From positions 992,001 through 1,056,000 of the forward strand of contig MU008164.1 in assembly GCA_010909165.1 (NCBI GenBank): 64,000 bases of DNA. The letters run 5' to 3'. Positions within the stretch are counted from its first letter, which is position 1. Each line of letters starts with the position of its first letter. The translations under genes were made by a program, and so were the position numbers. The DNA is from Anthoceros angustus. Lineage: Eukaryota > Plantae > Anthocerotophyta. This document shows, piece after piece, positions 27,583 to 58,604 of this stretch. The notes below the pieces were generated by a model, which was given only the letters and a program-made list of their open reading frames with translations, ran no database searches and was not told the DNA's origin.

Positions 27583-29180
27583 TCAGCATTTGTAGTCTGA
27601 AGGGTGAGGAGCGTTGGAGCGTAAGCCTAGACTGCCCGTGCTAGCGTTCACGTCTTGGTGGGCATGCAACTTCCAGTTCACCACATCCACCAGGCAGGTG
27701 CCCACCACTACGTCATCCACCAGTCCTCTTCCCACAATCTGTGAGTGCAGCTGCCGCAACCGGCTGTAAGGCGCCAGTGCCTGCACAGGCCTACAGAAGG
27801 GAAGGAAAGGTAACATGGGAAGCCGAAAAATGGGACCGCCTCTTCCATTTGTTCTATACACAACAAGCGCCTCATGTCCGAGCACTTGCTGGGCAGACCG
27901 AGCAATCAAGGCAGTACATGTCACCAGATTTTTGTGTTCATGCTGTCAAATACCTGGCGTGTATCTTCCAGTTCACCACATTTTGCATCCATGCCCACCA
28001 GAGAGGTGCCTACCATATATGTCATCCAGGAGTCCTCTTTTGACAGTCCGTGATTGCAGCTGCCTGGCCTTCTCAAGTTATTTGTGCCTGTACAGGCCTA
28101 CGGAAGGCAAGCAAAAGTAACATGGTCAGCCAAAATGAGGCCCGCCTCCTCCATTCGAGCATACACAACAAGCGCGTCCTGTCCAAGCCCCTGCTGGGCA
28201 AATCCAGCTACCAGGGCAATCCATGTCACCAGAATTTTTGTGTTCATGCTGTCAAAAACCTGGCGAGCATCTTTCAGTTCATCACATTTGCATATCCAGC
28301 CATCAGCGCCGTCCATGTCACCACATCCTCCTTGGCCATGCTTTCAAAAACCTGGCGTGCATCTCAGTTCGCCACATTTTGCATACATGTCCACCGGGCA
28401 GTTGCCCTCTTTCGACAATCTGTGAGTGCAGCTGCCTGCCCTACTCTAAGGCGCCAGTGCATGCACAGGCCTACAGAGGGCAAGCCAAGTGACATGTTCA
28501 GCCAAAATGAGTCCCTGCTTCCTCCATTTGTCCATCCATACACAGCAAGAGCCTATGTCCGAGTCCTTGCTGGGCATATTATACCCAGCTATTAAGGCAG
28601 TCCATGTCACCGCATGTTTTGTGTTCATGCTGGTGAAAACCTGGTGTGCATCTTTCAGTTCACAACATTTTGCATACCCAGCGATCAGCGCCTTACATAT
28701 CACCACACCCTTCTTGGCCATGCTTTCAAAAACCTGGCGTGCATCTGGCAGTTCACCACATTTTGCATACATGTCCACCAGGCAGCTGCCAACAAACAAG
28801 TTAGTAGGAGTGCTGGATCACAAGTACCATACCCAGATATCAGGGCAATCCATGTCGCCAGAAATTTTTGTGTTCATGCTCTCAAAAACCTGGCGTGCAT
28901 CGTTCAGTTCACCACATTTTGCGTACCCAGCGATCGGCGCCGTCCATGTCACCACATCCTTCTTGGCCATACTTTCAAAAACCTGGCGTGCATCTGCCAG
29001 TTCGCCACATTTCGCATACATGTCCACCATGCAGGCCTGTGTCCACCACAACGTCATCCAGCAGTCCTCTTTCGACCATCTGAGAGTGCAGCTGCTTGCC
29101 CTTCTGTAAGGCACCAGTGTTTGCACAGGCATTCAGCTTGGAATCCACCACCTCCTTGGCTTGAGTCCTGCGCACGCTCT
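27583..29180 (-). pseudogene. PLS-class PPR pseudogene, no E/DYW domain
   Basis: Repeated [35 protein letters not shown], QQGLGQDALVVYARMEEAG and [19 protein letters not shown] motifs in several frames, with many frameshifts. Confidence 0.9.
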
Positions 29181-40928: not shown

Positions 40929-42935
40929 CTACAGTGGAAAAGGTCTTGCAGTGACAGATGTGGCAGCCTTGTCATCCAGATAAAGAAGCTCTATGACAAC
41001 AGCATCATCCGGAGACCCCGTGTACTTGGGTACTCTTTCCAAAAGCCCAGGTTTCAGTTTCTTCCCTTCATACAGTGCATTCGCCAACGGGAACTGAGAC
41101 CAGCACTGAATAGCAGCGGTATTTGCAGGTGAGAACCCTATGACCTGCCCATCCCTGGCAAGGACAACCTGGTACGCGAGCACATTCTCCACTGAAAATG
41201 CAGTTTCTCCAACGTTTACAGGACCAGGACCAGGGGATGAGCCAACTTCAATTCCAGCCACAGGTGCTGAATCACTAAGCACTGCAGAACCACTGGCTTC
41301 ATCTTCCGGCTTCACTTCATCAACAGTTTCAGAAGTCGATGCCATCTCTGCACTCCCCTCAGGCTCCTGTGTGGTGGCCTCTCGGGGCCTCTCCCATTTG
41401 GTGAGGTTCAACCCCATCCAAGCACCTTCTCCAGCCTTGCTCCCTATCTCCTCCGACCAGCCAATACCATCCTTCACCATGGCTACCACAACTCGACATA
41501 GCACCTCCATCTCCTTCCCAGGTAACTGGTCATTGATTGGCAGGAACGGTTTCCGATTGCTTGACGCCGTGGACAGTGGTCTGAATACACTTGTGACAGC
41601 AGCAGGTAGGGCAGAGCTGCCCTGGACCTTCCCACTCCGCAGTCTGGCTGCCACCAGGACACCAATCAGCACAGCCACTCCCACAAGCATGGCAGCCACA
41701 GACATGGTCGCAGCCAGTATTACCCGACCCCGGGACCCCAAGGGCACCAGAAGCTCTGCTTCAGAGCTCAACTTCTTGCCAGGAACAGTGAAAGGATCAT
41801 CGTAGTAGCAATCCAGAACATTCGCAAGCTCCACCATCTGAGCATGGGTAAGCAAGACTGTCCACCACCCAGGCCCTTCCTTCTTCACCCTCCCCCCTCC
41901 TTCCACCTCAACTTCTGCCCTCTCCATATTAATCTGCAGCATGTGTGCAGGCACATACTCAAGAACCCAAGCATCTCCTGGCGGCATCAACGAAGGCGGC
42001 ATCACACTGGTAAGCGGCCACCAACCATGCCCTTCTCTGCGTCTCACCCAAGACCCACGCTGCTCAGGACCCGGCAGCTCACCCCACCGCCTCCTGACTT
42101 CATCCGCCATCTCCCTGGCAGACAGCAGCCGGACTCGAACCAGGGCATTCCTGTCTGGATTCCACCTCATGCCGCCCACAAACCTCCTCAACCCTCTCCA
42201 CTCCTCCCCAGTCCACTTCTTGGTGCAGGCCAGGGCATGTGAGGCAACAGCCATGGCAATCCAATCCAGCATCTTCACATTTAAGCTCACCACCCTGGCC
42301 GCAGCCTCCCCGCCTTCCTCCTCTTCCTCCTGCACCCTCCCCATGTCCCGCACATGCCCGGGCCCCAGCACTTTCAGCTCGAACCGCATCCCCCGCCGCA
42401 TCACCACAAGCTCACACTCCCTCAACCCGCCGGCCCTGCCCTTTCTCCCATCCTCCCGCGCCCTCTCCGCCACCAGCTTCGTCGGGGCCAGAATCCTGGT
42501 GGACACAGTGCTCCGTTCCCCGACGCTCCCTCTCACCGTGATGTCCACGGTCATCAAGCTCTTCCCCCTGCCCAGCTCCTCCTCCGCCGTCCTCCCCCCA
42601 TCGGAAGCCAGCGCAGCCAGAGCTTCCCCGGCAGCAGCGTCGCCCATCAGCTCCAGACTGCACAGCTCGTTCTTGTACGACCTGACGATGGGAAACGAAT
42701 CCGAATCCTGCAGCTTCCTAGCTGCTTCCTGCTGCTGGGTTGCAGCGATGCAGAAGCCAGAGCATTTCTTCCAGACCCTCCTGCTCCACCTTGTCTCCAC
42801 TCTCTCAATCCCAGTGCCTGCAGCCCATAGCTTCCCAGCTCTCCTCTGCTGCTGCTGCTGCTGCTGCCCACCGACTCCAGGAACAACGACATAGCCACCA
42901 CTGACAGCATGCCCATAGATGCAACCTAGCCTCAT
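40929..42935 (-). CDS. ANU10: Intronless 668-aa plastid protein resembling ANGULATA10
   Basis: Motifs recalled from the Arabidopsis At1g28530 family: RSYKNEL, ALASDGG, STVSTRILAP, VLLTHAQMVELANVLD.YY.D, one TM segment, YQVVL..DG.VIGF.P, LYEGKKLKPGLLE. The symbol comes from memory, not a search. Confidence 0.65.
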   Translation of the reverse strand: MRLGCIYGHAVSGGYVVVPGVGGQQQQQQQRRAGKLWAAGTGIERVETRWSRRVWKKCSGFCIAATQQQEAARKLQDSDSFPIVRSYKNELCSLELMGDAAAGEALAALASDGGRTAEEELGRGKSLMTVDITVRGSVGERSTVSTRILAPTKLVAERAREDGRKGRAGGLRECELVVMRRGMRFELKVLGPGHVRDMGRVQEEEEEGGEAAARVVSLNVKMLDWIAMAVASHALACTKKWTGEEWRGLRRFVGGMRWNPDRNALVRVRLLSAREMADEVRRRWGELPGPEQRGSWVRRREGHGWWPLTSVMPPSLMPPGDAWVLEYVPAHMLQINMERAEVEVEGGGRVKKEGPGWWTVLLTHAQMVELANVLDCYYDDPFTVPGKKLSSEAELLVPLGSRGRVILAATMSVAAMLVGVAVLIGVLVAARLRSGKVQGSSALPAAVTSVFRPLSTASSNRKPFLPINDQLPGKEMEVLCRVVVAMVKDGIGWSEEIGSKAGEGAWMGLNLTKWERPREATTQEPEGSAEMASTSETVDEVKPEDEASGSAVLSDSAPVAGIEVGSSPGPGPVNVGETAFSVENVLAYQVVLARDGQVIGFSPANTAAIQCWSQFPLANALYEGKKLKPGLLERVPKYTGSPDDAVVIELLYLDDKAATSVTARPFPL

Positions 42936-43516: not shown

Positions 43517-44547
43517 ATGGCGGGAGCCAGTACTATGTGCAGTACCGGAGCGGTGGTTTGCAGGGCTGTGAGGCTGTGCCCATCTTCGGCAGGAATCAGC
43601 ATGAGGCTGCTCCCCGGCGTCGGCTTCAGGCTCAGGAACTCTCTCCGGCCTCGGTACCTGGTCACCACGCCTGCCCTTAGGTCGGCTGTGGTGCAGGCGC
43701 AGTATCCTGGCGATGGCGGAGGCCCCGGGGTGGACGGTTATGTGAGCCAGGCACCGCCGGCCCCTGCCTATCAGCAGCAACCGTTTCAGCAGCAACAGCA
43801 GCAGCAGCAGCAGCCGCAGCAGCAGCCTGGGAACCCCAGCGCTGGTACGTTATCGTGGGTTGTGAGGGGAATTGATGTGCTTGGTTTGCTCTTGCTGCAA
43901 CGTGTTTGTGGCCTGCAGGAGGCCAGGTAGACCCTAATGCGGAGCAGCTGTGGCGGTCGCTCTTCTCCAATCCGTCGCAGTTCTGGGATGACCGGAGCAA
44001 GAAGGTAATGCTGGATTGGTCTACCAGATGTGAAAACACCTCTGGAGTAAGTTTGTGGAGTTGTTGTTGAAGCTTTGGTTAACGATGCTTGGTGTGTGAA
44101 TGCCTGCAGAGGTTTCCCAGCGACCCGGACTTTGTGAAGAAGGGAACCAGAGACAAGCTCTGGATTGAGAGCCCCACCACGCCGCCCTGGGTGCAAGGGC
44201 AGCTATCTCAGCTGCCGGCTCCAGTTGCCAGGCCACCTCGTCAGTTTGGGAACCAGGGCGGGTATGGAAACCAGGGTCAGGGATACCAGCAAGGAGGCGG
44301 AGGTGGAGGTGGTGGGCAGTGGGCTAACAGGCAGGGAGACCCGAATGCTCCACAGGAGAATCGGCCCAGGCCAAGGTATAGGGAGACTTACAGACCTCAA
44401 CCTAAGCTCACGCCCGAGGAAGAAGCTGCGAGAGAGGAGAGGATCAGGCAGATCCTGAGCCACAATCCTCCAGAGCACCGTCGACTTTTCACCCATAAAT
44501 ATTTCCCAGATCCCTTTACTGGAGAGTATGACCCGCCAGATTCCTAG
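43517..44547 (+). CDS. Organelle-targeted protein with one PDF (OSB-type ssDNA-binding) motif; exons 43517-43844, 43919-44004, 44110-44547
   Basis: Transit-like N-terminus and polyQ. Spliced motif AEQLWRSLFSNPSQFWDDRSKK|[32 protein letters not shown] matches OSB PDF consensus W..L..NP..WWD.R..K.NP..PDFK.K....LW. Gly/Gln tail and an AAREERIRQIL motif follow. Confidence 0.8.
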
Positions 44548-45817: not shown

Positions 45818-46950
45818 CGGATCCGGATTGGCAGTCCAAGAAGCCGGTTTGAAGGTGATCGATCTTCGATTGGCCTGTGGGGAGAGTCAAATGCCGTGCG
45901 ATCATTCATTCAGTCGTGCTACAGCTTGCAAAGATCATCATCTCACCGTTGCATCCCAGAATGACAAAACGGTAGCATTGCACTCCTAGTAGCTTGATGT
46001 CAAACAACGCAGTGCAAATCAAACAATGTGCTCGAAAATCAATATCACAGGTGACGGTGACACAACCCACTTCGTTCCAACATCTAACGCCATCGAAATC
46101 TACCATTTGCGATACCTGAGAGCTCAGGTCGTCTCTCTCCTGTGGGACGCGTCTGCTCCCGGGAGGCAGCCCTGCTGAGAAAGTCTGAGCGATATTCTCT
46201 TTTAAACGCAGTGGCACCACACGCGATTGTGCAACAGGCAGGATAAACTTGCAAGTGGCAACGGGCCCGCAGTCCGAAACAGATGCCCTTGTCCCTCCAC
46301 AATCGACCTCGATCCTCCTTGTGTGAGCTGTATTTTCTCTCGGTAATTCGTCATCCAGTTAACACAACCACTGTTTGATCCAAAATTGGATCGGGCTTGG
46401 GCTGCTTGGAGTATGTGCATAAGTGTGTCATATCAGGACGGTCCACCTTTAGTCCCTTCAGTGTGTTAATGAACGAAGATCTGGTAGAAGTCTGATGCAA
46501 ATTCCGTGCACAACGTCCTTAGAGGGTATTCATGATCCTCATGTTGCGGCACACAGCCCCTCGTCCTGCTGTTAAAGGTCAGGCTTCCTTGTCCTTTCGT
46601 GACAATCAATGGCCTCTTGCTCAAGCTTCTCTCATGTTGATTCATTTGGACAAAACGTCAGTTGGGAGACGCCATTTGAAAGCTCAATGACGTCTGAACA
46701 GCTTGAGGTGATTCTTCTGCAGGTGTTTGGAAGCTGATTTTTATTATCAATGCTTGGATGTTGGGATACATGGCAGGTCGGAACCCAATTACACAAGCCT
46801 TCTGGAAGGCTTTCTCAACGCTATAAGCGATGCGTACATCTCATGCAAAGCCCCTGCAGCTAGACGGCAAAACCGCACACGTCTACTGGGCGGGCGATTG
46901 TTGCATGGGAATCCACAATCTGTACAGGCGTGATCAAGACGTCTCCCTTC

Positions 46951-47175
46951 TCACTTGCCAGGCGGAGGAGGTGGACACACAGTCGGGAAGCAACATCCTG
47001 GATTTCCAGGAAGGCAGCAAGGTGCTCCATATCTGCAGGCGAGAAGCCGCCGTTTGTGGTCGGAGATTCCACCTTCCGACATGCCTTCCATAGCGCCGGC
47101 AACAGCCACAAGCTGCAGGCACACAATCATGAACGTGATGAGGAAGATCCCAACAACTGCTGCGCGCTTCGCCAT
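46951..47175 (-). CDS. Secreted Cys-rich pre-pro-peptide, copy 2 (mature ACRYGAPCCLPGNPGCCFPTVCPPPPPGK)
   Basis: Same architecture as copy 1. Confidence 0.8.
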   Translation of the reverse strand: MAKRAAVVGIFLITFMIVCLQLVAVAGAMEGMSEGGISDHKRRLLACRYGAPCCLPGNPGCCFPTVCPPPPPGK

Positions 47176-48306
47176 CGGATCCGGATTGGCAGTCCAAGAA
47201 GCCGGTTTGAAGGTGATCGATCTTCGATTGGCCTGTGGGGAGAGTCAAATGCCGTGCGATCATTCATTCAGTCGTGCTACAGCTTGCAAAGATCATCATC
47301 TCACCGTTGCATCCCAGAATGACAAAACGGTAGCATTGCACTCCTAGTAGCTTGATGTCAAACAACGCAGTGCAAATCAAACAATGTGCTCGAAAATCAA
47401 TATCACAGGTGACGGTGACACAACCCACTTCGTTCCAACATCTAACGCCATCGAAATCTACCATTTGCGATACCTGAGAGCTCAGGTCGTCTCTCTCCTG
47501 TGGGACGCGTCTGCTCCCGGGAGGCAGCCCTGCTGAGAAAGTCTGAGCGATATTCTCTTTTAAACGCAGTGGCACCACACGCGATTGTGCAACAGGCAGG
47601 ATAAACTTGCAAGTGGCAACGGGCCCGCAGTCCGAAACAGATGCCCTTGTCCCTCCACAATCGACCTCGATCCTCCTTGTGTGAGCTGTATTTTCTCTCG
47701 GTAATTCGTCATCCAGTTAACACAACCACTGTTTGATCCAAAATTGGATCGGGCTTGGGCTGCTTGGAGTATGTGCATAAGTGTGTCATATCAGGACGGT
47801 CCACCTTTTAGTCCCTTCAGTGTGTTAATGAACGAAGATCTGGTAGAAGTCTGATGCAAATTCCGTGCACAACGTCCTTAGAGGGTATTCATGATCCTCA
47901 TGTTGCGGCACACAGCCCCTCGTCCTGCTGTTAAAGGTCAGGCTTCCTTGTCCTTTCGTGACAATCAATGGCCTCTTGCTCAAGCTTCTCTCATGTTGAT
48001 TCATTTGGACAAACGTCAGTTGGGAGACGCCATTTGAAAGCTCAATGACGTCTGAACAGCTTGAGGTGATTCTTCTGCAGGTGTTTGGAAGCTGATTTTA
48101 TTATCAATGCTTGGATGTTGGGATACATGGCAGGTCGGAACCCAATTACACAAGCCTTCTGAAGGCTTTCTCAACGCTATAAGCGATGCGTACATCTCAT
48201 GCAAAGCCCCTGCAGCTAGACGGCAAAACCGCACACGTCTACTGGGCGGGCGATTGTTGCATGGGAATCCACAATCTGTACAGGCGTGATCAAGACGTCT
48301 CCCTTC

Positions 48307-48531
48307 TCACTTGCCAGGCGGAGGAGGTGGACACACAGTCGGGAAGCAACATCCTGGATTTCCAGGAAGGCAGCAAGGTGCTCCATATCTGCAGGCGAGA
48401 AGCCGCCGTTTGTGGTCGGAGATTCCACCTTCCGACATGCCTTCCATAGCGCCGGCAACAGCCACAAGCTGCAGGCACACAATCATGAACGTGATGAGGA
48501 AGATCCCAACAACTGCTGCGCGCTTCGCCAT
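48307..48531 (-). CDS. Secreted Cys-rich pre-pro-peptide, copy 3 (same protein as copy 2)
   Basis: Same architecture as copy 1. Confidence 0.78.
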   Translation of the reverse strand: MAKRAAVVGIFLITFMIVCLQLVAVAGAMEGMSEGGISDHKRRLLACRYGAPCCLPGNPGCCFPTVCPPPPPGK

Positions 48532-49567
48532 CGGATCCAGATTGGCAGTCCAAGAAGCCGGTTTGAAGGTGATCGATCTTCGATTGGCCTGTGGGGAGAG
48601 TCAAATGCCGTGCGATCATTCATTCAGTCGTGCTACAGCTTGCAAAGATCACCATCTCACCGTTGCATCCCAGAATGACAAAACGGTAGCATTGCACTCC
48701 TAGTAGCTTGATGTCAAACAACGCAGTGCAAATCAAACAATGTGCTCGAAAATCAATATCACAGGTGACGGTGACACAACACCCACTTCGTTCCAACATC
48801 TAACGCCATCGAAATCTACCATTTGCGATACCTGAGAGCTCGGAGTCGTCTCTCTCCTGTGGGACGCGTCTGCTCCCGGGAGGCAGCCCTGCTGAGAAAG
48901 TCTGAGCGATATTCTCTTTTAAACGCAGTGGCACCACACGCGGTTGTGCAACAGGCAGGATAAACTTGCAAGTGGCAACGGGCCCGCAGTCCCAAACAGA
49001 TGCCCATGTCCCTCCACAATCGACCTCGATCCTCCTTGTGTGAGCTGTATTTTCTCTCGGTAATTCGTCATCCAGTTAACACAACCACTGTTTGATCCAA
49101 AATTGGATCGGGCTTGGGCTGCTTGGAGTATGTGCATAAGTGTGTCATATCAGGACGGTCCACCTTTTAGTCCCTTCAGTGTGTTAATGAACGAAGATCT
49201 GGTAGAAGTCTGATGCAAATTCCGTGCACAACGTCCTTAGAGGGTATTCATGATCCTCATGTTGCGGCACACAGCCCCTCGTCCTGCTGTTAAAGGTCAG
49301 GCTTCCTTGTCCTTTCGTGACAATCAATGGCCTCTTGCTCAAGCTTCTCTCATGTTGATTCATTTGGACAAACGTCAGTTGGGAGACGCCATTTGAAAGC
49401 TCAATGACGTCTGAACAGCTTGAGGTGATTCTTCTGCAGGTGTTTGGAAGCTGATTTTTATTATCAATGCTTGGATGTTGGGATACATGGCAGGTCGGAA
49501 CCCAATTACATAAGCCTTCTGGAAGGCTTTCTCAACGCTATAAGCGATGCGTACATCTCATGCAAAG

Positions 49568-49756
49568 AAGAAGAACAAGAATTTTATTTTAGTCCACTAA
49601 GGACGCATTTCCGTCATGGGACTTGGTACTTAACAACTTGTACCATGGTGCGCCTAAGCTACTTGCACCAAGGGCATCCACTCCCTTTAGGCACCCCCAT
49701 CTAAGTACCGATCGAGGCTGAGGATGCTTAATCACGGCGTTCTTATAAATGTGTGT
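49568..49756 (-). mobile_element. 189-bp SINE-like element, copy 2, inserted in the peptide array
   Basis: Sits between GCAAAG and CCCCTGCAGC, which are contiguous in units 2 and 3 (empty site). No TSD visible. Confidence 0.85.
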
Positions 49757-49856
49757 CCCCTGCAGCTAGACGGCAAAACCGCACACGTCTACTGGGCGGG
49801 CGATTGTTGCATGGGAATCCACAATCTGTACAGGCGTGATCAAGACGTCTCCCTTC

Positions 49857-50081
49857 TCACTTGCCAGGCGGAGGAGGTGGACACACAGACGGGAAGCAAC
49901 ATCCTGGACTTCCAGGGAAGCAGCAAGTTGCTCCATATCTGCAGGCGAGAAGCCGCCGCTTGTGGTCGGAGATTCCACCTTCCGACATGCCTTCCATAGC
50001 GCCGGCAACAGCCACAAGCTGCAGGCACACAATCATGAACGTGATAAGGAAGATCCCAACAACTGCTGCGCGCTTCGCCAT
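49857..50081 (-). CDS. Secreted Cys-rich pre-pro-peptide, copy 4 (mature ACRYGATCCFPGSPGCCFPSVCPPPPPGK)
   Basis: Same architecture as copy 1. Confidence 0.8.
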   Translation of the reverse strand: MAKRAAVVGIFLITFMIVCLQLVAVAGAMEGMSEGGISDHKRRLLACRYGATCCFPGSPGCCFPSVCPPPPPGK

Positions 50082-51344
50082 CGGATCCGGATCGGCAGTC
50101 CAAGAAGCCGGTTTGAAGGTGATCGATCTTCGATTGGCCTGTGGAGAGAATCAAATGCCGTGCGATCATTCAGTCAGTCGTGCTACAGCTTGCAAAAGAT
50201 CATCATCTCACCGTTGCATCCCAGAATGAAAAAACGGTAGCATTGCACTCCTAGTAGCTTGATGTCAAACAACGCAGTGCAAATCAAACAATGTGCTCGA
50301 ACATCGATATCACAGGTGACGGTGACACGACCCACTAACAGCTAATGCCCCCGAAAGCTACCATCCGCAATACCTGAGAGCGTCGGAGTCGTCTCTCTCA
50401 GATTGAACGAGTATGCTCCCGGGGGCCAGGCCTGCTGGGAGAGATCGAGCGATGATCTGTTTCAACCGCAGTGGCTCCGCATGCGATTGTCTAACAGGCA
50501 GGATAAACTTGCAAGTTGCAACGGGCCCGCTGTCCGAAACAGATGCCGATCTCCGTCCACAATGGGACTCGATGCCCGTTGTGTGGGCTGTATTTTCTCT
50601 CGTTAACAGAAACACTGGTGGATACACAGGCTCTCACACGTTCGAGGGAGTAACACAGATGCCCAACTGTTCATGAATAGAATAAAAAACTATTAAAGAA
50701 AAAGAAAGATGCCGAACTAAATTTAGGACAGTTCGGATGGCGCTTCTCGGACATCACTAATCAAACACAACCCTTGTGCTCAAGCTCAAGTGAAGTGACA
50801 TTCATGATGAACTTGAGAAGATTTACCCACATTCCAACATACCTAGTGCCATAGAGGCCTCCGGTTTTGGACATCGTAGATTATTTTTTAGAAAATAAAT
50901 CATTCTTTTTTAATATTATATAATATTATTTATATTTATAGTATATTAAATAGGTAGTATTGTAATGTACCTACTTCTATGATTTTGTTCCGTGCCGCTC
51001 AATAACACTAGTTGCAGCAACTATAGAATTACGTCATAGGCGTACATAATGTAAAGGTCAAGCACCATCAAGAGACAAGAAAGATCCTATCCCAACATCA
51101 ACATGCTATGCAAAATAGCAACGGGGTTGCTCTCTATCATCTTTTTTAGAGAATTTGGAGACTTTATATGGATATTTCAAAGTGCACATTGAAGTCCCGC
51201 AAGTGCACATTCCTCTTTTGTTTTTGGGGTGGATGGGTTTTTCCCATCTCTTTTTTATAATAAAGTCTTCTTTCCCTCCATTGAAGTCCCGCACTAAGAG
51301 TTTACTTCAGCACTCACAACTGGCGGATTCCAACACTAACCTCT

Positions 51345-53948: not shown

Positions 53949-54652
53949 ACCTTCTATAAGACTTGGAAATAAAAATTCTTTGAACAAAATCAATAAAATG
54001 AAATGAGAAGCAATGAAACTACAATGTATGTCTTCCTCACAAAATAACGTGGATCAGTTTCACAAATACAATATGGGTGACACTTGCCTACAAAAAGATA
54101 CCACAAAGACTTGAAGGAATAATATTTACATGTGAATCAAGAAAAGAGCACAAAGACTTAGAGGAATAAAGACTTCGAATATTAACAAAGGTGGTTCAAC
54201 AAACTTGGACATCACTCACGCGAAAGGATATTGGACGTAAGAGGTTTTATATCAAAATAAGACAGATAAGTAAAATTATCAGAGAGGAAAACCGAACCAC
54301 CTATACAAATACAGAGTGTATTGTGCAACGGTGGTCGAAAGTAAAGGAAAGCGAAACGTTACGCAGGCAAGGTTGCCCTAAATTGGCGTGAACGCAGGGC
54401 CATATACATTTCAGTGCGTGAACCGTGCTCGTCTGCCACCTCCCTGGGATAGGGAACTTACGAAAGTCACAATCAGGAATCAGGGTGATACGAAATCGGG
54501 GACCGGAGGCTGCTGGCAGCCGAGGTGTTCAGGTATCTCATTCCACTTTTTCATTGCAGGCACCTGGATCGCCGCAATGCATACCAACTACTACTATACT
54601 AGTCTGATCTTTCAGAGATGTTTGGACTCTATCTACCAGAAGATGAATCACC

Positions 54653-57252
54653 TTACCAATAGTCATTACAGGAACACTTGCCGTCCTTGAAGTGATGAAA
54701 CCTGTTGTTATCCCTAGCTATGATTTCCCTCCCTGTGAGCTTCGTGACAGCCTTGGTCCAGTCATGGCAGTCTATACACACCCGCAGATTCTTGAAAACC
54801 CGAATGGGAGCTGGGGCGGGGATGTTCAGCAGACCGAAAGCAATGGCCAGTTTCTCACTATGGTACTCTGCGTTGTCCTCTAAGTTGCCTTCCCCTCCCT
54901 CCTGTTCAATGACACGCCGGCTGTGGCGAGGATACTTCCTAATGGGACCCTTCTGTGACCCTGGTGGTGGCCTCGGTGGAGGAGGGATGTAATCTGGTTC
55001 TATCCGGCCATCTGGATTGAGTTTCTTCTTCTCCCTGATTTCCTTCAAAATCTCATCGATGACTTTGTTCACGGGTTCCATCTCCTTCAAGCTGATCTCC
55101 TTTTGCGTGAGCTTCTTTGAACCCGTCAGTGAGCCCTCAATGACATCATCCAAAATGGCACCAGACGAAGCTGCAGATGAGGCAGAGGACTTCAACTTGA
55201 TTGGAGCCTTCAAAATCTCCAGGTGTCTCTGCATTTCAGGAGAGAGCTCCTTCTTCGGTTTTGCAGATGCTCCATTCTCCGGTGTCGGGTCAGAATCTGA
55301 TGCATTGCTTGCTGCGGCCTCAACTTTCTCAGCTGGAGGAGATGCCAGACGGGTCTCCAGTGGTTTAGCTGCACTCAAAGGGGATGCCAATGTTGTAGCT
55401 GCACTTGACGGGGATGCCAATGGTGTAGCTGCACTTGAAGGGGATGCCAATGGAGTAGCTGCATTTAGCGGGGACGCCCATGGTGTAGCAGGTGTCACTG
55501 GAGAGGACACAGCTGAAGGGGGTGCCGGGGGAGTAGCAGGTTTAGCAGGAGAGGGTATCCCAGCTAATATCTGCCTTGCTCTCTCTTCTCTAGCTGCTTG
55601 TTCCTCCGGAGAAACAGCAGTTTGCCCAGGTCTGCCTACTGTAGGCTGCACTCTATCTTGATAACCACTCATGGGACCCGGTCTTGCTCCTTGAGGCACT
55701 GTCGGTTGTGCCCATGCCTCATTTTTACCGGCAGAATCCAATACTGTAGGCTGCACTATGTCTTGATAACCACTGATAGGACCTGGCCTTGCTGCTTGAG
55801 TCACTGTGGGTTGCGCCCATGCCTCACTTTGACCAGCAGAATCCAATACACTCGACGGCTTTGAAGGATTGACGCTCACATCCGACTTAATATTCTCCTG
55901 CTTCACAGCTTCATCGACAGAAAGCTTGGACCCTGTTCCAACACTAGTTCCCAGGGGTGCAGCAGGCTGCACAACTCTGCTCTTACCGAATTCGCCTGCA
56001 AGAATCTGTCTCGCCAACTCGTCTCTTCTTGCCTGTTCCTCTGGAGATACGGCAGGCCTTCCTCTTCCACCTAACGACACAGTAGGTTGGACTCTCTCTC
56101 TGTAACCACCAATAGGTCTAGCCAGAATCTCCCGTGCTCGTGCATCACGAGCCTCCTGTGTATCATTCGGGTCTGCAGGACCTACTGATGACCTGCTCTC
56201 CTGACTCTGCACCCCCGGGCTGTTACCCCACTGGGAACCGTTTACAGCTTCACCTGCATTCCCCACTCCACCACCTTGTGAGAATCCCTGGTTAGGCGAC
56301 CTGAATCCTGGATTCCCGTAGCCCCCCTGGTTTCCATACCCTCCCTGGTTCCCATACCCCCCCTGGTTCCCATACCCTCCCTGGCTCCCATACCCTCCCT
56401 GGCTCCCATACCCTCCCTGGCTACCATACCTCCTGGTTCCCATACCCCCCCTGGTTCCCATACCCTCCCTGGCTCCCATACCCTCCCTGGCTCCCATACC
56501 CTCCCTGGCTACCATACCCTCCCTGGTTCCCATACCCCCCCTGATTCCCATATCCCCTAGGAGGCGGCCTGCTTGGTGGCGGTAACTGAGCAAGCTCCCC
56601 TTTCACCCAAGTAGGAGTAGTTGAGCTCTCAACCCACAACTGTTCTCTCGTCCCTTTCTTCACAAAGTCAGGGTCACTAGGATACCTCTGTACACATCAA
56701 CAAACACCAACAACCATAAGCAACCGCAAACCTTTAATCCACCTCAACAAGTACAAAATGCCAGTGCAAAGCAGACAGCAAGCTAACGCTTGGCTCACCT
56801 TCCTAGACCTATCATCCCACCACTGCGACGGATTCGAGAAGTACAAGCGCCAGAGCTTCTCCGCATTTTCCTTCTCATCTGCAGGCCACAAAAAACGTTG
56901 CAGCACAGAACACCCCGGGAATAACCCAATCGCATTCACTCCCCCTTCACCACAACCACGTACCCTCTATGGAGTTCCCGAAGGGCGAAGACGCAGGGCT
57001 CGGAATCGACTGGGTCCCAAATCCGTCCACCCCTGGAGCCCCGCCATCGACATCCAGCTCCGCCCTGGCCAGGGCAGTCCGGGAAGCAGGTCGAGAAACC
57101 CCGTACCGCAGCCGCACCCCGCTTCTGAGCCTCAACCCCTCAGCTTGGCGCAGGCGCAGGCTGCGGCGCCTGGTTCCAGCTGATGGCGGGCACAAACTCA
57201 CAGCCTTACACACAACTGCCCCGGCACTGCACACTGTGCCAGCTCCCGCCAT
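54653..57252 (-). CDS. Transit peptide - PDF motif - GYG(N/S)QG repeats - Pro/Ala-rich linker - DYW deaminase C-terminus; no PPR motifs; exons 57252-56964, 56878-56799, 56687-54653, with a 2-nt frameshift near 56430
   Basis: Same intron positions and phases as the 43517 paralog. PDF motif [22 protein letters not shown]|[21 protein letters not shown]-terminus [13 protein letters not shown]...[14 protein letters not shown]...[23 protein letters not shown]. Confidence 0.8.
56310..56560 (-). repeat. Coding 18-bp repeat, about 14 x GYG(N/S)QG
   Basis: CCATACCCTCCCTGG(T/C)T units. One unit at ~56430 lacks two G on the coding strand. Confidence 0.9.
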
Positions 57253-57589
57253 CTCCTGAGCCCAGACCCTTTGCACTTCCTTCACGCGCCAGCAGCAGGA
57301 CACGGGAACAAAAACCTCACAATCTAGCCGACAGGACACACACAAGGGTTGCATTCACACAGGGAAATGCAGCACGTTACCATGAATCTCTCGAGTCCGC
57401 AGCTTCTCTAGCCTAGGCTACAGCGCCCACATCCCGGATCAGGCCCAGATGCAGCTCCCGGCTGCTTCGATCCCTTACGCCTTCGTGAGCTTCGGTGACG
57501 GCGGGACGAAAGGTTTAAGGTAGAGAGAAGCTAAAACCCTACCCTTGGCAAAAATATCTCCAATGAGGAAGCCTCTAGTCGTTCGGCTC

Positions 57590-57880
57590 CATCTCATCAC
57601 TCCTCTGGACATGCATGCCAAATGTGGGGGCTACAAGGTGAATGCGGAGTCTTGGACATTGTACCTAGTGTTGAGGAAAAGTGTGCTGACGTTCAATGCG
57701 ATGATTCCAGGCTACGTGCGGCATTGACGTCTTCAAGAGGCTTTTGAAGTGTGCTGAAGCTTGTGGAAGCTTATTAGCATCATCCAGGAGGGTAGGCAGG
57801 TGCAAGCTTACCGAACATTAGAGTCAGATATGTTTGTGGGTAGTGCATTGGTGGACAAATCTGCTAAATGTGGGGGCGTT
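57590..57880 (+). pseudogene. Short PLS-PPR relic
   Basis: LDMHAKCGG, SVLTFNAMIPGYVRH, IQEGRQVQA..LESDMFVGSALVDKSAKCGG, with stops and frameshifts. Confidence 0.75.
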
Positions 57881-58604
57881 TCTCCTGTATCCCTCCGTGG
57901 TCCAGGTTGGAGTACCCTTGGCCCTCGGCCTGCTGCCCTCTATATCGAGCTTGTATGTCCATGTGACGATTCTCATATTTACGTCCAGCAGCCAATTTGC
58001 AGATTGTCCACATGCAGACCCCAATCTTGATATGAAATCCTACCAGGAAGTCCAAGGCACGATTCGAAACAATGGTGCCCAACAGGCGTTGCTGTGATTA
58101 CCAGTGGAATAGTCATGCATTTGCTGTGATTGTTGGATGCCCAGACTGCCATGATGTACGTGCTGAGGCCTCTGCTGCGAGAGCTTGGCTGTCCCCAGGC
58201 TGAGGAGTGGGTCCGAAGATGGAAGAATTATGTGTAGAAAGGGCGCTTGAGGACCTCTCGCTTGAAACTGATGCAGATGAATTGTGAGTTGCCGGGCATG
58301 TGACCTTGTCAGCTGCTGCTGTAGCCTTAGAAACAACTGTCCCTGTAGGTTTTGAAGGTGGTGGAAGGGGAGCCTGAACCATAGTCGGGACTCCGGCAGT
58401 CCAGCTGAACTCGGGACTCTGCAGGTATTCTTTTACTTGGCTCCTGACCACGAAACCGCAAGGCAAAGGTTGCAGGCTCCAAAGAAGCTAAGAAATTTTG
58501 AGTCAGTTAACACACGGACACCAACACAACAACACTCAGGATGGGAAACTGTGTGAGCAGAAGGGCAAACCGAGACCGGCCATTCTCGTACTTCTACTGC
58601 CAAG

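Follow-up and report, generated by a model that had tools for sequence, protein, structure and literature searches.

What can a DYW deaminase domain do in a protein that has no PPR tract to provide RNA sequence specificity? The question is raised by a gene in 64,000 nucleotides of the hornwort Anthoceros angustus (assembly GCA_010909165.1, contig MU008164.1, forward strand, positions 992,001 to 1,056,000; hereafter the window). The gene lies on the minus strand with a coding span of 57252-54653 in window coordinates, which are used throughout. An earlier note, made from the sequence alone, had described it as a PDF motif of the type found in OSB proteins fused to a DYW domain, and had left open whether the product acts on organellar single-stranded DNA (ssDNA) or nucleoids, acts on single-stranded RNA (ssRNA), serves as a trans-acting deaminase or is a decoy. 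Of these options the trans-acting one fits best, because the PG box is missing as in Arabidopsis DYW1, the residues that dock on PPR proteins are kept, and E+ PPR proteins are reported to be enriched in hornworts; the ssDNA or nucleoid option is weakened, given that the PDF motif also heads RNA editors. By analogy with DYW1, the PDF-DYW protein is most likely the trans-acting catalytic subunit of a split C-to-U RNA-editing enzyme that docks on E+ PPR proteins, a reading to which we give a probability of about one half.

The gene model was established from six-frame translation and from Logan contigs of RNA sequenced from this species (run X1). Contigs of a short-read DNA run of the same sample (X2) were compared with the window as well. 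Two close relatives, represented by an RNA contig of organism C (X17) and a DNA contig of organism B (X3), were aligned to the window. A single X1 contig joins 56687 to 56799, 56878 to 56964 and 57278 to 57380, which removes introns of 111, 85 and 101 nucleotides (nt), all three with GT..AG ends on the minus strand. Both coding introns proposed in the earlier note are confirmed by this contig, and the third intron was found in the 5′ untranslated region (5′UTR), so that the gene has three coding exons and one additional 5′UTR intron. A second X1 contig corresponds to 54435-56272 without any difference. The X2 DNA contig differs from the window over 54400-56132 by two substitutions (55526 and 56072) and 17 gap letters, although the RNA contig of the same sample is identical; this could be repeat collapse in the DNA contig or heterogeneity. 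The start codon at 57252 is favored because a MAG start is conserved in the hornwort protein P0001 and in a paralogue at 43517 (both described below). The spliced leader (57253-57451) also contains a 4-codon upstream open reading frame (ORF) and, 10 codons before 57252, a further ATG in the same frame.

The conserved part of the protein is its C-terminal module of 200 residues. Pfam DYW_deaminase (PF14432) matches residues 523-592 of the long ORF with an E value of 2e-31, over profile positions 24-93 only, and the PDB sequence matches of the module are a synthetic PPR-DYW protein (9kfx), DYW1 (7w86) and OTP86 (7o4e). The catalytic zinc signature, HSE with CIDCH, is present and is invariant in a MAFFT alignment of 62 sequences that compares the hornwort family with 57 canonical DYW domains (alignment A1). 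The second zinc site and the DYW end are formed by H164, H187, C194, C196 and D198-Y199-W200 of the module. Pfam and the alignment therefore uphold the claim that the zinc ligands HSE, CIDCH and HHF..CSC and the terminal DYW are all intact. The last ∼75 residues are 58-64% identical to solved Arabidopsis and synthetic DYW domains, which, together with the terminal DYW triplet, points to the C-to-U type and not to the KP (U-to-C) type.

No Pfam match to PPR, E or E+ (PG box, Eplus_motif) was obtained in the gene even at E≤1, and tblastn with PPR-DYW proteins reaches only its PDF and DYW ends. In the control protein P0040, Pfam finds an E motif, then an E+ motif and then DYW_deaminase positions 1-93, whereas in the hornwort family the DYW_deaminase match begins only at position 19-24. 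The architecture of one gene with the order PDF, linker, DYW and with no PPR, E1 or E2 is thus borne out by splicing, Pfam and the relatives.

The missing N-terminal part of the deaminase profile was located in alignment A1. The alpha-1 helix is retained relative to the canonical.EIY.KL..L...M, and the WIEV..H.F..GD hairpin is deleted in the family. After the GYVPD position, the canonical sequences show a gap of ∼21 columns inside a Pro/basic segment of 34 residues in the family, and the alignment resumes at the gating segment. The AlphaFold2 (AF2) model of the module has pLDDT values above 90 for residues 130-200 and of about 85-94 for helix 56-79. Values are low in the insert, the gating segment is helical at low confidence, and there is no N-terminal hairpin. 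The PG box, which the earlier note could not recognize, is therefore missing on three counts: no Eplus_motif match, deletion in the MAFFT alignment and no hairpin in AF2. The Pro-rich insert that had been thought to interrupt the gating helix is real, and it was placed between an alpha-1-like helix and the gating segment. A segment lying upstream in the module was considered as a cryptic PG box and rejected, being helical at low confidence in AF2 and absent from a compact paralogue. The best Foldseek match of the AF2 model is DYW1 (7w86), with a target-normalised TM score of 0.72 over 143 columns; OTP86 is matched over only 67-69 columns.

The structure of a PPR-DYW:RNA complex published in 2026 identifies E544 as the catalytic base and L567 as the residue that stacks on the target C, and shows that R568, R591, R595, F596 and H598 anchor the DYW domain on the P2-L2-S2-E motifs. 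According to the same paper, recruited DYW proteins keep these residues. Mapping from the alignment of the PDB sequence matches, where the index is offset by 2 relative to the numbering of the paper, assigns these seven positions of consPPR-DYW to E134, L157, R158, R181, R185, F186 and H188 of the module. None of them is missing, and in A1 each is invariant or nearly so. As judged from the sequence and the model, the module is without the PG-box hairpin, yet its catalytic centre, its two zinc sites and the surface that docks on PPR proteins are preserved. Such a DYW domain is probably not self-sufficient.

Arabidopsis DYW1 likewise has no PPR motifs and no PG box, is built of four strands and two helices, and relies on the E+ protein CRR4, whose E2 motif and PG box complete its substrate pocket. 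In a comparable arrangement in Anthoceros, an E+ PLS-PPR protein, ending after E2 and the PG box, would bind the editing site and contribute E2 together with the PG-box strands that the module lacks, in the way that CRR4 completes DYW1. The PDF-DYW protein would dock on it in trans and deaminate C to U. The PDF motif and the linker would add contacts to a single-stranded nucleic acid or to a partner; the motif may hold single-stranded RNA or contact PPR partners that bear a PDF motif themselves. The E+ subgroup, comprising DYW-less PPR proteins, has been reported to be “exclusively enriched in hornworts.” Organelle targeting, the partnership in trans with E+ PPR proteins, the RNA substrate and the role of the PDF motif are what we infer from these features.

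The PDF-DYW architecture is not peculiar to the window. Relatives were sought by word-indexed searches, one of which, with the long ORF, recovered P0001, and by an exhaustive HMMER search with P0001 over 1.84 billion representatives. P0001 is an intact ORF of 609 residues with a presequence, a PDF motif, RERRAREILA-type motifs and a DYW module, the last 198 residues of which are 84% identical to the window module. In the HMMER search only two more PPR-less clusters, P0033 and P0035, ranked above ordinary PPR-DYW proteins. P0033 clusters with P0183, a transcript of Nothoceros aenigmaticus, which identifies the family as a hornwort family. No members outside hornworts were found in either search, and the family count is a lower bound, given that hornwort proteins are sparse in the libraries and that orthologues with long exons are missed owing to the length filter and the ORF-style gene calls. 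The genomic contig of P0033 (L003), from another genus, has its PDF intron at about the same place as the window gene; a single open exon of 2.8 kb then covers the remaining half of the PDF motif, GGYGQ(S/P) repeats, ∼600 Ser/Pro-rich residues and the DYW domain. The same sample contains a compact paralogue (L002, 5212-6444, plus strand, including P0035) of ∼300 residues, in which a presequence and a split PDF motif are joined by a linker of ∼60 residues to a PG-box-less DYW domain. It is without the LDILKAP..LDDVIE segment and the Pro-rich part of the insert and keeps IRRYPRHNRK; no gene of this compact type was found in the 64-kb window. Together, P0001, L002, L003 and P0183 extend the architecture described in the earlier note to a conserved family across hornwort genera. 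The gene of P0001 (L001, 3270-5117, plus strand) is an uninterrupted ORF, unlike the intron-bearing genes of the window, L002, L003 and the Sphagnum PDF-PPR-DYW gene. This reflects either intron loss (perhaps a retrocopy) or a transcript-derived contig, though the contig also carries a divergent neighbour gene.

Comparisons between genera gave pN (nonsynonymous) values of 0.06-0.08 in the deaminase core against pS (synonymous) values of 0.75-0.86, which are saturated, and a dN/dS of ∼0.035 for the window against L001 over all 200 codons. By these sequence measures the family is under strong purifying selection. In a tree of the last 100 residues of 70 sequences, the deeper nodes of which are weak at 100 columns, the five family members form one clade with support of 100/98 on a long branch. 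The earlier fear that catalysis may have been lost is not upheld, in that purifying selection acts strongly on the insert and on every catalytic residue. The loss of the PG box, the 34-residue insert and the altered gating segment (modelled at low confidence) would suit a non-catalytic regulator or scaffold, a pseudo-enzyme or decoy that, bound to E+/E2 PPR proteins or to RNA, would modulate editing but not deaminate. However, while their surroundings diverge, HxE, CxxC, the Leu that stacks on the target C and the two zinc sites do not vary between genera or between the two paralogue types. This is the pattern expected of an active site, and we consider a non-catalytic role unlikely.

The N-terminal part of the protein was analysed for its targeting and binding properties. 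The first 70 residues, rich in Ala, Ser and Gly, include 13 R+K against 4 D+E, and the N-terminus MAG..(V/M)CS.G is common to the window protein, P0001 and the paralogue at 43517. A presequence of this composition suggests targeting to an organelle. The PDF motif, present in a single copy, occupies residues 98-158 of the spliced protein, encoded by 56876-56799 and 56687-56583. In phmmer comparisons it scored 47-57 bits against each of the three PDF repeats of P0041, an OSB-type protein, and 36-44 bits against the repeats of P0039. The PDF region of P0001 matches multi-PDF proteins in HMMER. By these scores the window motif is a genuine homologue of the OSB type. P0039 and P0041 also carry the SSB domain (Pfam PF00436), whereas no SSB/OB match was obtained in the pieces of the window gene or in P0001.

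In AtOSB1, the PDF motif is reported to suffice for binding ssDNA, and the window protein combines a clear homologue of the OSB repeats with the lack of a PPR tract for RNA sequence specificity. The motif could accordingly be imagined to bring the DYW domain to organellar ssDNA, such as replication or recombination intermediates or R-loops, where it would deaminate dC or act co-transcriptionally. Against this, ordinary PPR-DYW factors of Sphagnum (P0038) and Diphasiastrum (P0040) begin with the same PDF motif, which therefore does not imply a DNA target. Moreover, the gene is without the OB/SSB domain of OSB proteins, the conserved PPR-docking residues would be purposeless on DNA, and the incomplete fold speaks against autonomous activity. 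We regard an organellar ssDNA deaminase as improbable, and slightly more improbable still its PPR-independent, nucleoid-associated form, which would edit DNA, or nascent RNA co-transcriptionally. If true, a nucleoid-associated PDF-DYW protein would be a plant organellar counterpart of AID/APOBEC-type enzymes.

Between the PDF motif and the DYW module lie the repeats and the linker. The GYG(N/S)QG array, for which 14 units were counted and which has a weak Pfam GRP match, is shorter than in the window by 196 nt in X17 and by 124 nt in X3. The low-complexity linker that follows contains three E..AR..(A)R.ILA motifs, two 35-residue AWAQPTV.. repeats and another short repeat type. Its length changes in the relatives are all in frame (105, 189 and 78 nt), and across the family it ranges from ∼60 residues in L002 to ∼600 or more in L003, which indicates a tether and not a domain. 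The PDF motif (by phmmer), the GYG(N/S)QG repeats and the three AR..RAR.ILA repeats listed in the earlier note were all recovered. In its fuller form, E(E).A(A)R(E)(E)RAR.ILA, the last of these occurs three times in the window gene, twice in P0001 at about residues 280-320 and once in the PDF-only paralogue, is absent from L003 and matched no known family.

These repeats are also relevant to a self-sufficient deaminase of low specificity, in which the PDF motif and the Gly/Tyr-rich region would hold organellar ssRNA and the DYW domain would edit it without a PPR partner. The PDF motif is a single-strand binder, the GYG repeats are similar to Gly-rich tails found in RNA-binding proteins, and the compact paralogue in L002 consists of just PDF and DYW. 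Nevertheless, the deaminase sheet is missing the strands of the PG box, a defect that makes DYW1 dependent on CRR4; P0001 is without the GYG array, and unspecific editing would be harmful. There is accordingly little to commend autonomous ssRNA editing, which we rate as low as action on ssDNA in general.

The reading frame required separate attention. On the coding strand of the assembly, the eighth GYG unit reads CAGGAGGTAT, where all other units read CAGGGAGGGTAT, and as assembled this frameshift leads to a stop after seven GYG units. The 2-nt frameshift that the earlier note reported in a G-run repeat near 56430 is thus present in the assembly, and the relatives keep a single frame. In X17, the RNA contig runs from exon 2 across the 56799/56687 junction into the PDF motif, skips 56349-56544 (196 nt) and continues to 56191, and the next contig extends from 56207 to the stop codon. 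In X3, the DNA contig passes directly from 56419 to 56544 and so omits 124 nt. Both length differences are 1 mod 3, so that PDF and DYW share one frame in the relatives; all other indels in the coding part of both are multiples of three. Among the listed contigs of the same-species RNA and DNA runs none crosses the lesion, and the contigs break in the GYG repeat. A search for words of the 83 nt at the frameshift recovered one of four sampled 31-mers in the DNA run and none in the RNA run; with four words sampled, one in four is not significantly below the locus-wide share of 0.68.

The lesion is either an assembly error in the repeat or a very recent strain-specific mutation. In the latter case the locus would be a recently disabled pseudogene in the sequenced genome, its translation ending after seven GYG units, which would agree with the frameshift of the assembly, with the lack of a listed contig across it and with the single word recovered from the DNA run. 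On the other hand, the 1.8 kb downstream are an open frame covered by an RNA contig, the frame is kept in two relatives, and the share of recovered words is statistically compatible with that of the locus. An error is favored by the type of lesion, two one-base contractions of G-triplets within a 14-unit repeat, and by the open and transcribed frame downstream. We hold an assembly error to be about twice as likely as a real lesion, and the pseudogene explanation to be doubtful, though less so than the functional alternatives considered above.

Several observations weigh against a trans-acting deaminase. The enrichment of E+ proteins in hornworts comes from one paper, OSB1 is known to bind ssDNA through its PDF motif, and the reading frame is broken in the assembly as it stands. 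The Pro/basic insert and the gating segment, as modelled, have no counterpart in characterised DYW domains and could alter or abolish activity. Finally, the family is not orthologous to DYW1 or DYW2, so that the analogy with them is one of shape and residues.

In hornworts, editing takes place at hundreds of organellar sites, and E+ PPR proteins with no deaminase are reportedly in unusual excess. None of the flowering-plant donors DYW1, DYW2 and MEF8 has an orthologue in the clade of the hornwort family. The conserved and expressed DYW protein without a PG box offers a concrete candidate for the deaminase donor of hornwort E+ PPR proteins. If this is true, split editing enzymes arose twice, and the PDF motif gains a testable function outside DNA maintenance. 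A small trans-acting DYW module, such as the compact paralogue of ∼300 residues, could also interest designers of RNA base editors.

The origin of the gene was addressed through its introns and its relatives in the window. PDF-PPR-DYW proteins are found in a moss (P0038, Sphagnum compactum) and a lycophyte (P0040, Diphasiastrum complanatum). L002, L003 and the Sphagnum gene (L004) all have an intron in the PDF motif at nearly the position of the window intron (to within ±2 residues, judged by tblastn boundaries or by frame reading), and the Sphagnum gene carries the first half of the PDF motif on a mini-exon of ∼30 codons, as in the window. These features fit an origin in which a PDF-PPR-DYW gene lost, within its large exon, the stretch coding for PLS, E and PG box; alternatively, a PDF gene may have captured a DYW end. 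No sister group was accepted for the DYW module of the family: its nearest rows in the tree, P0069 and P0099 (Spirodela), are ordinary PPR-DYW proteins with odd gating, and their position is probably due to long-branch attraction.

An inverted paralogue in the window carries the PDF motif only. It has GYGNQGG units, one EEAAREERxRQIL motif and a short tail, and ends without a DYW part; no DYW remnant was found elsewhere in the window, including downstream of this gene. It stands beside a DUF8223 gene, and in L001 a DUF8223 neighbour faces the full PDF-DYW gene, the two DUF8223 proteins being 53% identical. The PDF motifs of the two window genes score 94 bits against each other and 70 and 58 bits against P0001. 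Being closer to the PDF-DYW gene of the window than to P0001, the PDF-only gene appears, by sequence, to derive from an older PDF-DYW gene by lineage-specific duplication and truncation, and not to be its ancestor.

Between the two PDF genes, a degenerate pattern search found a repeat (45993-50271) with a period of ∼1356-1551 nt and four copies per strand, which coincides with putative tandem genes for small Cys-rich peptides. Two stretches of PPR sequence are also present. One (27682-29172, minus strand) is a PLS-type array with many stops and frame changes and no recognisable E/DYW C-terminus. The other (57572-57892, plus strand) is a PPR-like remnant of ∼100 codons with ..YAKCG..-type repeats and frame changes, ∼120 nt beyond the outermost RNA-supported position of the 5′UTR. 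Both are broken fragments without a C-terminus, and no E+ PPR partner was found in the window. The coordinates of the features are collected in Table 1.

Table 1. Positions of the PDF-DYW gene, its parts and its neighbours in the window
Feature	Position	Strand	Basis
5′UTR exon (minimum extent)	57380-57451	-	RNA contig joint in X1, seen also in X17
5′UTR intron, 101 nt	about 57279-57379	-	RNA contig joint 57278/57380
Exon 1 (ATG at 57252; coding part 57252-56964, presequence)	57278-56964	-	RNA contig and translation
Coding exon 2, mini-exon, first half of PDF motif	56799-56878	-	RNA joints, GT..AG ends
Exon 3	56687 to stop codon 54653-54655	-	RNA contig and open frame
Second half of PDF motif, start of exon 3	56583-56687	-	phmmer against P0041 and P0039
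14 tandem 18-nt units coding GYG(N/S)QG	56322-56555	-	Repeat count in sequence
Net -2 frameshift: two adjacent G-triplets, each one base short	56430-56434	-	Unit comparison
Low-complexity linker, Ala/Pro/Ser/Gly-rich, ∼350 residues	55256-56321	-	Translation
Three E..AR..(A)R.ILA motifs	56155-56120, 56041-55997, 55606-55562	-	Pattern in translation
Conserved C-terminal module, 200 residues	54656-55255	-	Pfam, PDB sequence matches, P0001 identity, AF2, Foldseek, pN
Alpha-1-like helix	55075-55022	-	Alignment and AF2
Pro/basic insert, 34 residues	55015-54914	-	MAFFT and AF2
Gating segment	54913-54863	-	Alignment
HSE	54862-54854	-	
CIDCH	54778-54764	-	
HHF..CSC	54697-54668	-	
Terminal DYW	54664-54656	-	
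Stop codon and 3′UTR (minimum extent, at least 218 nt)	54435-54655	-	RNA contig reaches 54435
Inverted PDF-only paralogue	43517-44547	+	Presequence; PDF halves ∼300 nt apart, as across an intron
Intronless DUF8223 gene	40929-42935	-	Head-to-head with PDF-only paralogue

With regard to known systems, a literature search found no paper in which “PDF motif” and “DYW” occur together. OSB evolution was surveyed in 2026 in a paper that makes no mention of PPR, the searched passages of a 2026 kingdom-wide survey of domain fusions in editing factors list RRM-DYW and never mention OSB, and the literature found on DYW1-like or PPR-less DYW proteins is Arabidopsis work only. This agrees with the earlier note, which knew of no described PDF-DYW architecture. 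The PPR-less PDF-DYW protein, for which no describing paper was found, represents a new domain partner and an independent origin for a trans-type DYW domain without a PG box.

The PDF-PPR-DYW factors P0038 and P0040 share with the window gene an N-terminal presequence, one PDF motif split by an intron with a mini-exon, and a C-terminal DYW domain. However, they have a full PLS array, E1/E2 and the PG box where the window gene has low-complexity sequence. The OSB proteins AtOSB1-4 have a homologous PDF motif and an organelle presequence, which in the window protein is a predicted one, whereas the window protein has a single PDF motif, no OB/SSB domain and a C-terminal deaminase. DYW2 (At2g15690) and MEF8-type atypical PPR-DYW proteins are general trans-acting DYW donors for E+/E PPR proteins and resemble the window protein in the degenerate N-terminal part of their DYW domains. 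They differ from it in keeping a few PPR motifs (Pfam PPR matches in P0216) and in matching PF14432 over positions 1-93, where the PPR-less window protein matches 24-93.

The closest likeness is to DYW1 (At1g47580; 7w86), the best structural match of the AF2 model of the window module. Both have a PPR-less, N-terminally truncated DYW domain without a PG box, in which HxE/CxxC, the second zinc site and the residues of the PPR interface are kept. The hornwort protein adds the PDF motif, the long repeat linker and the conserved Pro/basic insert before the gating segment. In the tree described above, DYW1-like sequences (P0098, which matches 7w86 at 208 bits, and P0226) group together with DYW2-like sequences (the At2g15690 family) apart from the hornwort clade, with support of 99/88. 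On this evidence the hornwort family is not orthologous to DYW1 or DYW2, and the separate clades indicate that its resemblance to DYW1 is convergent.

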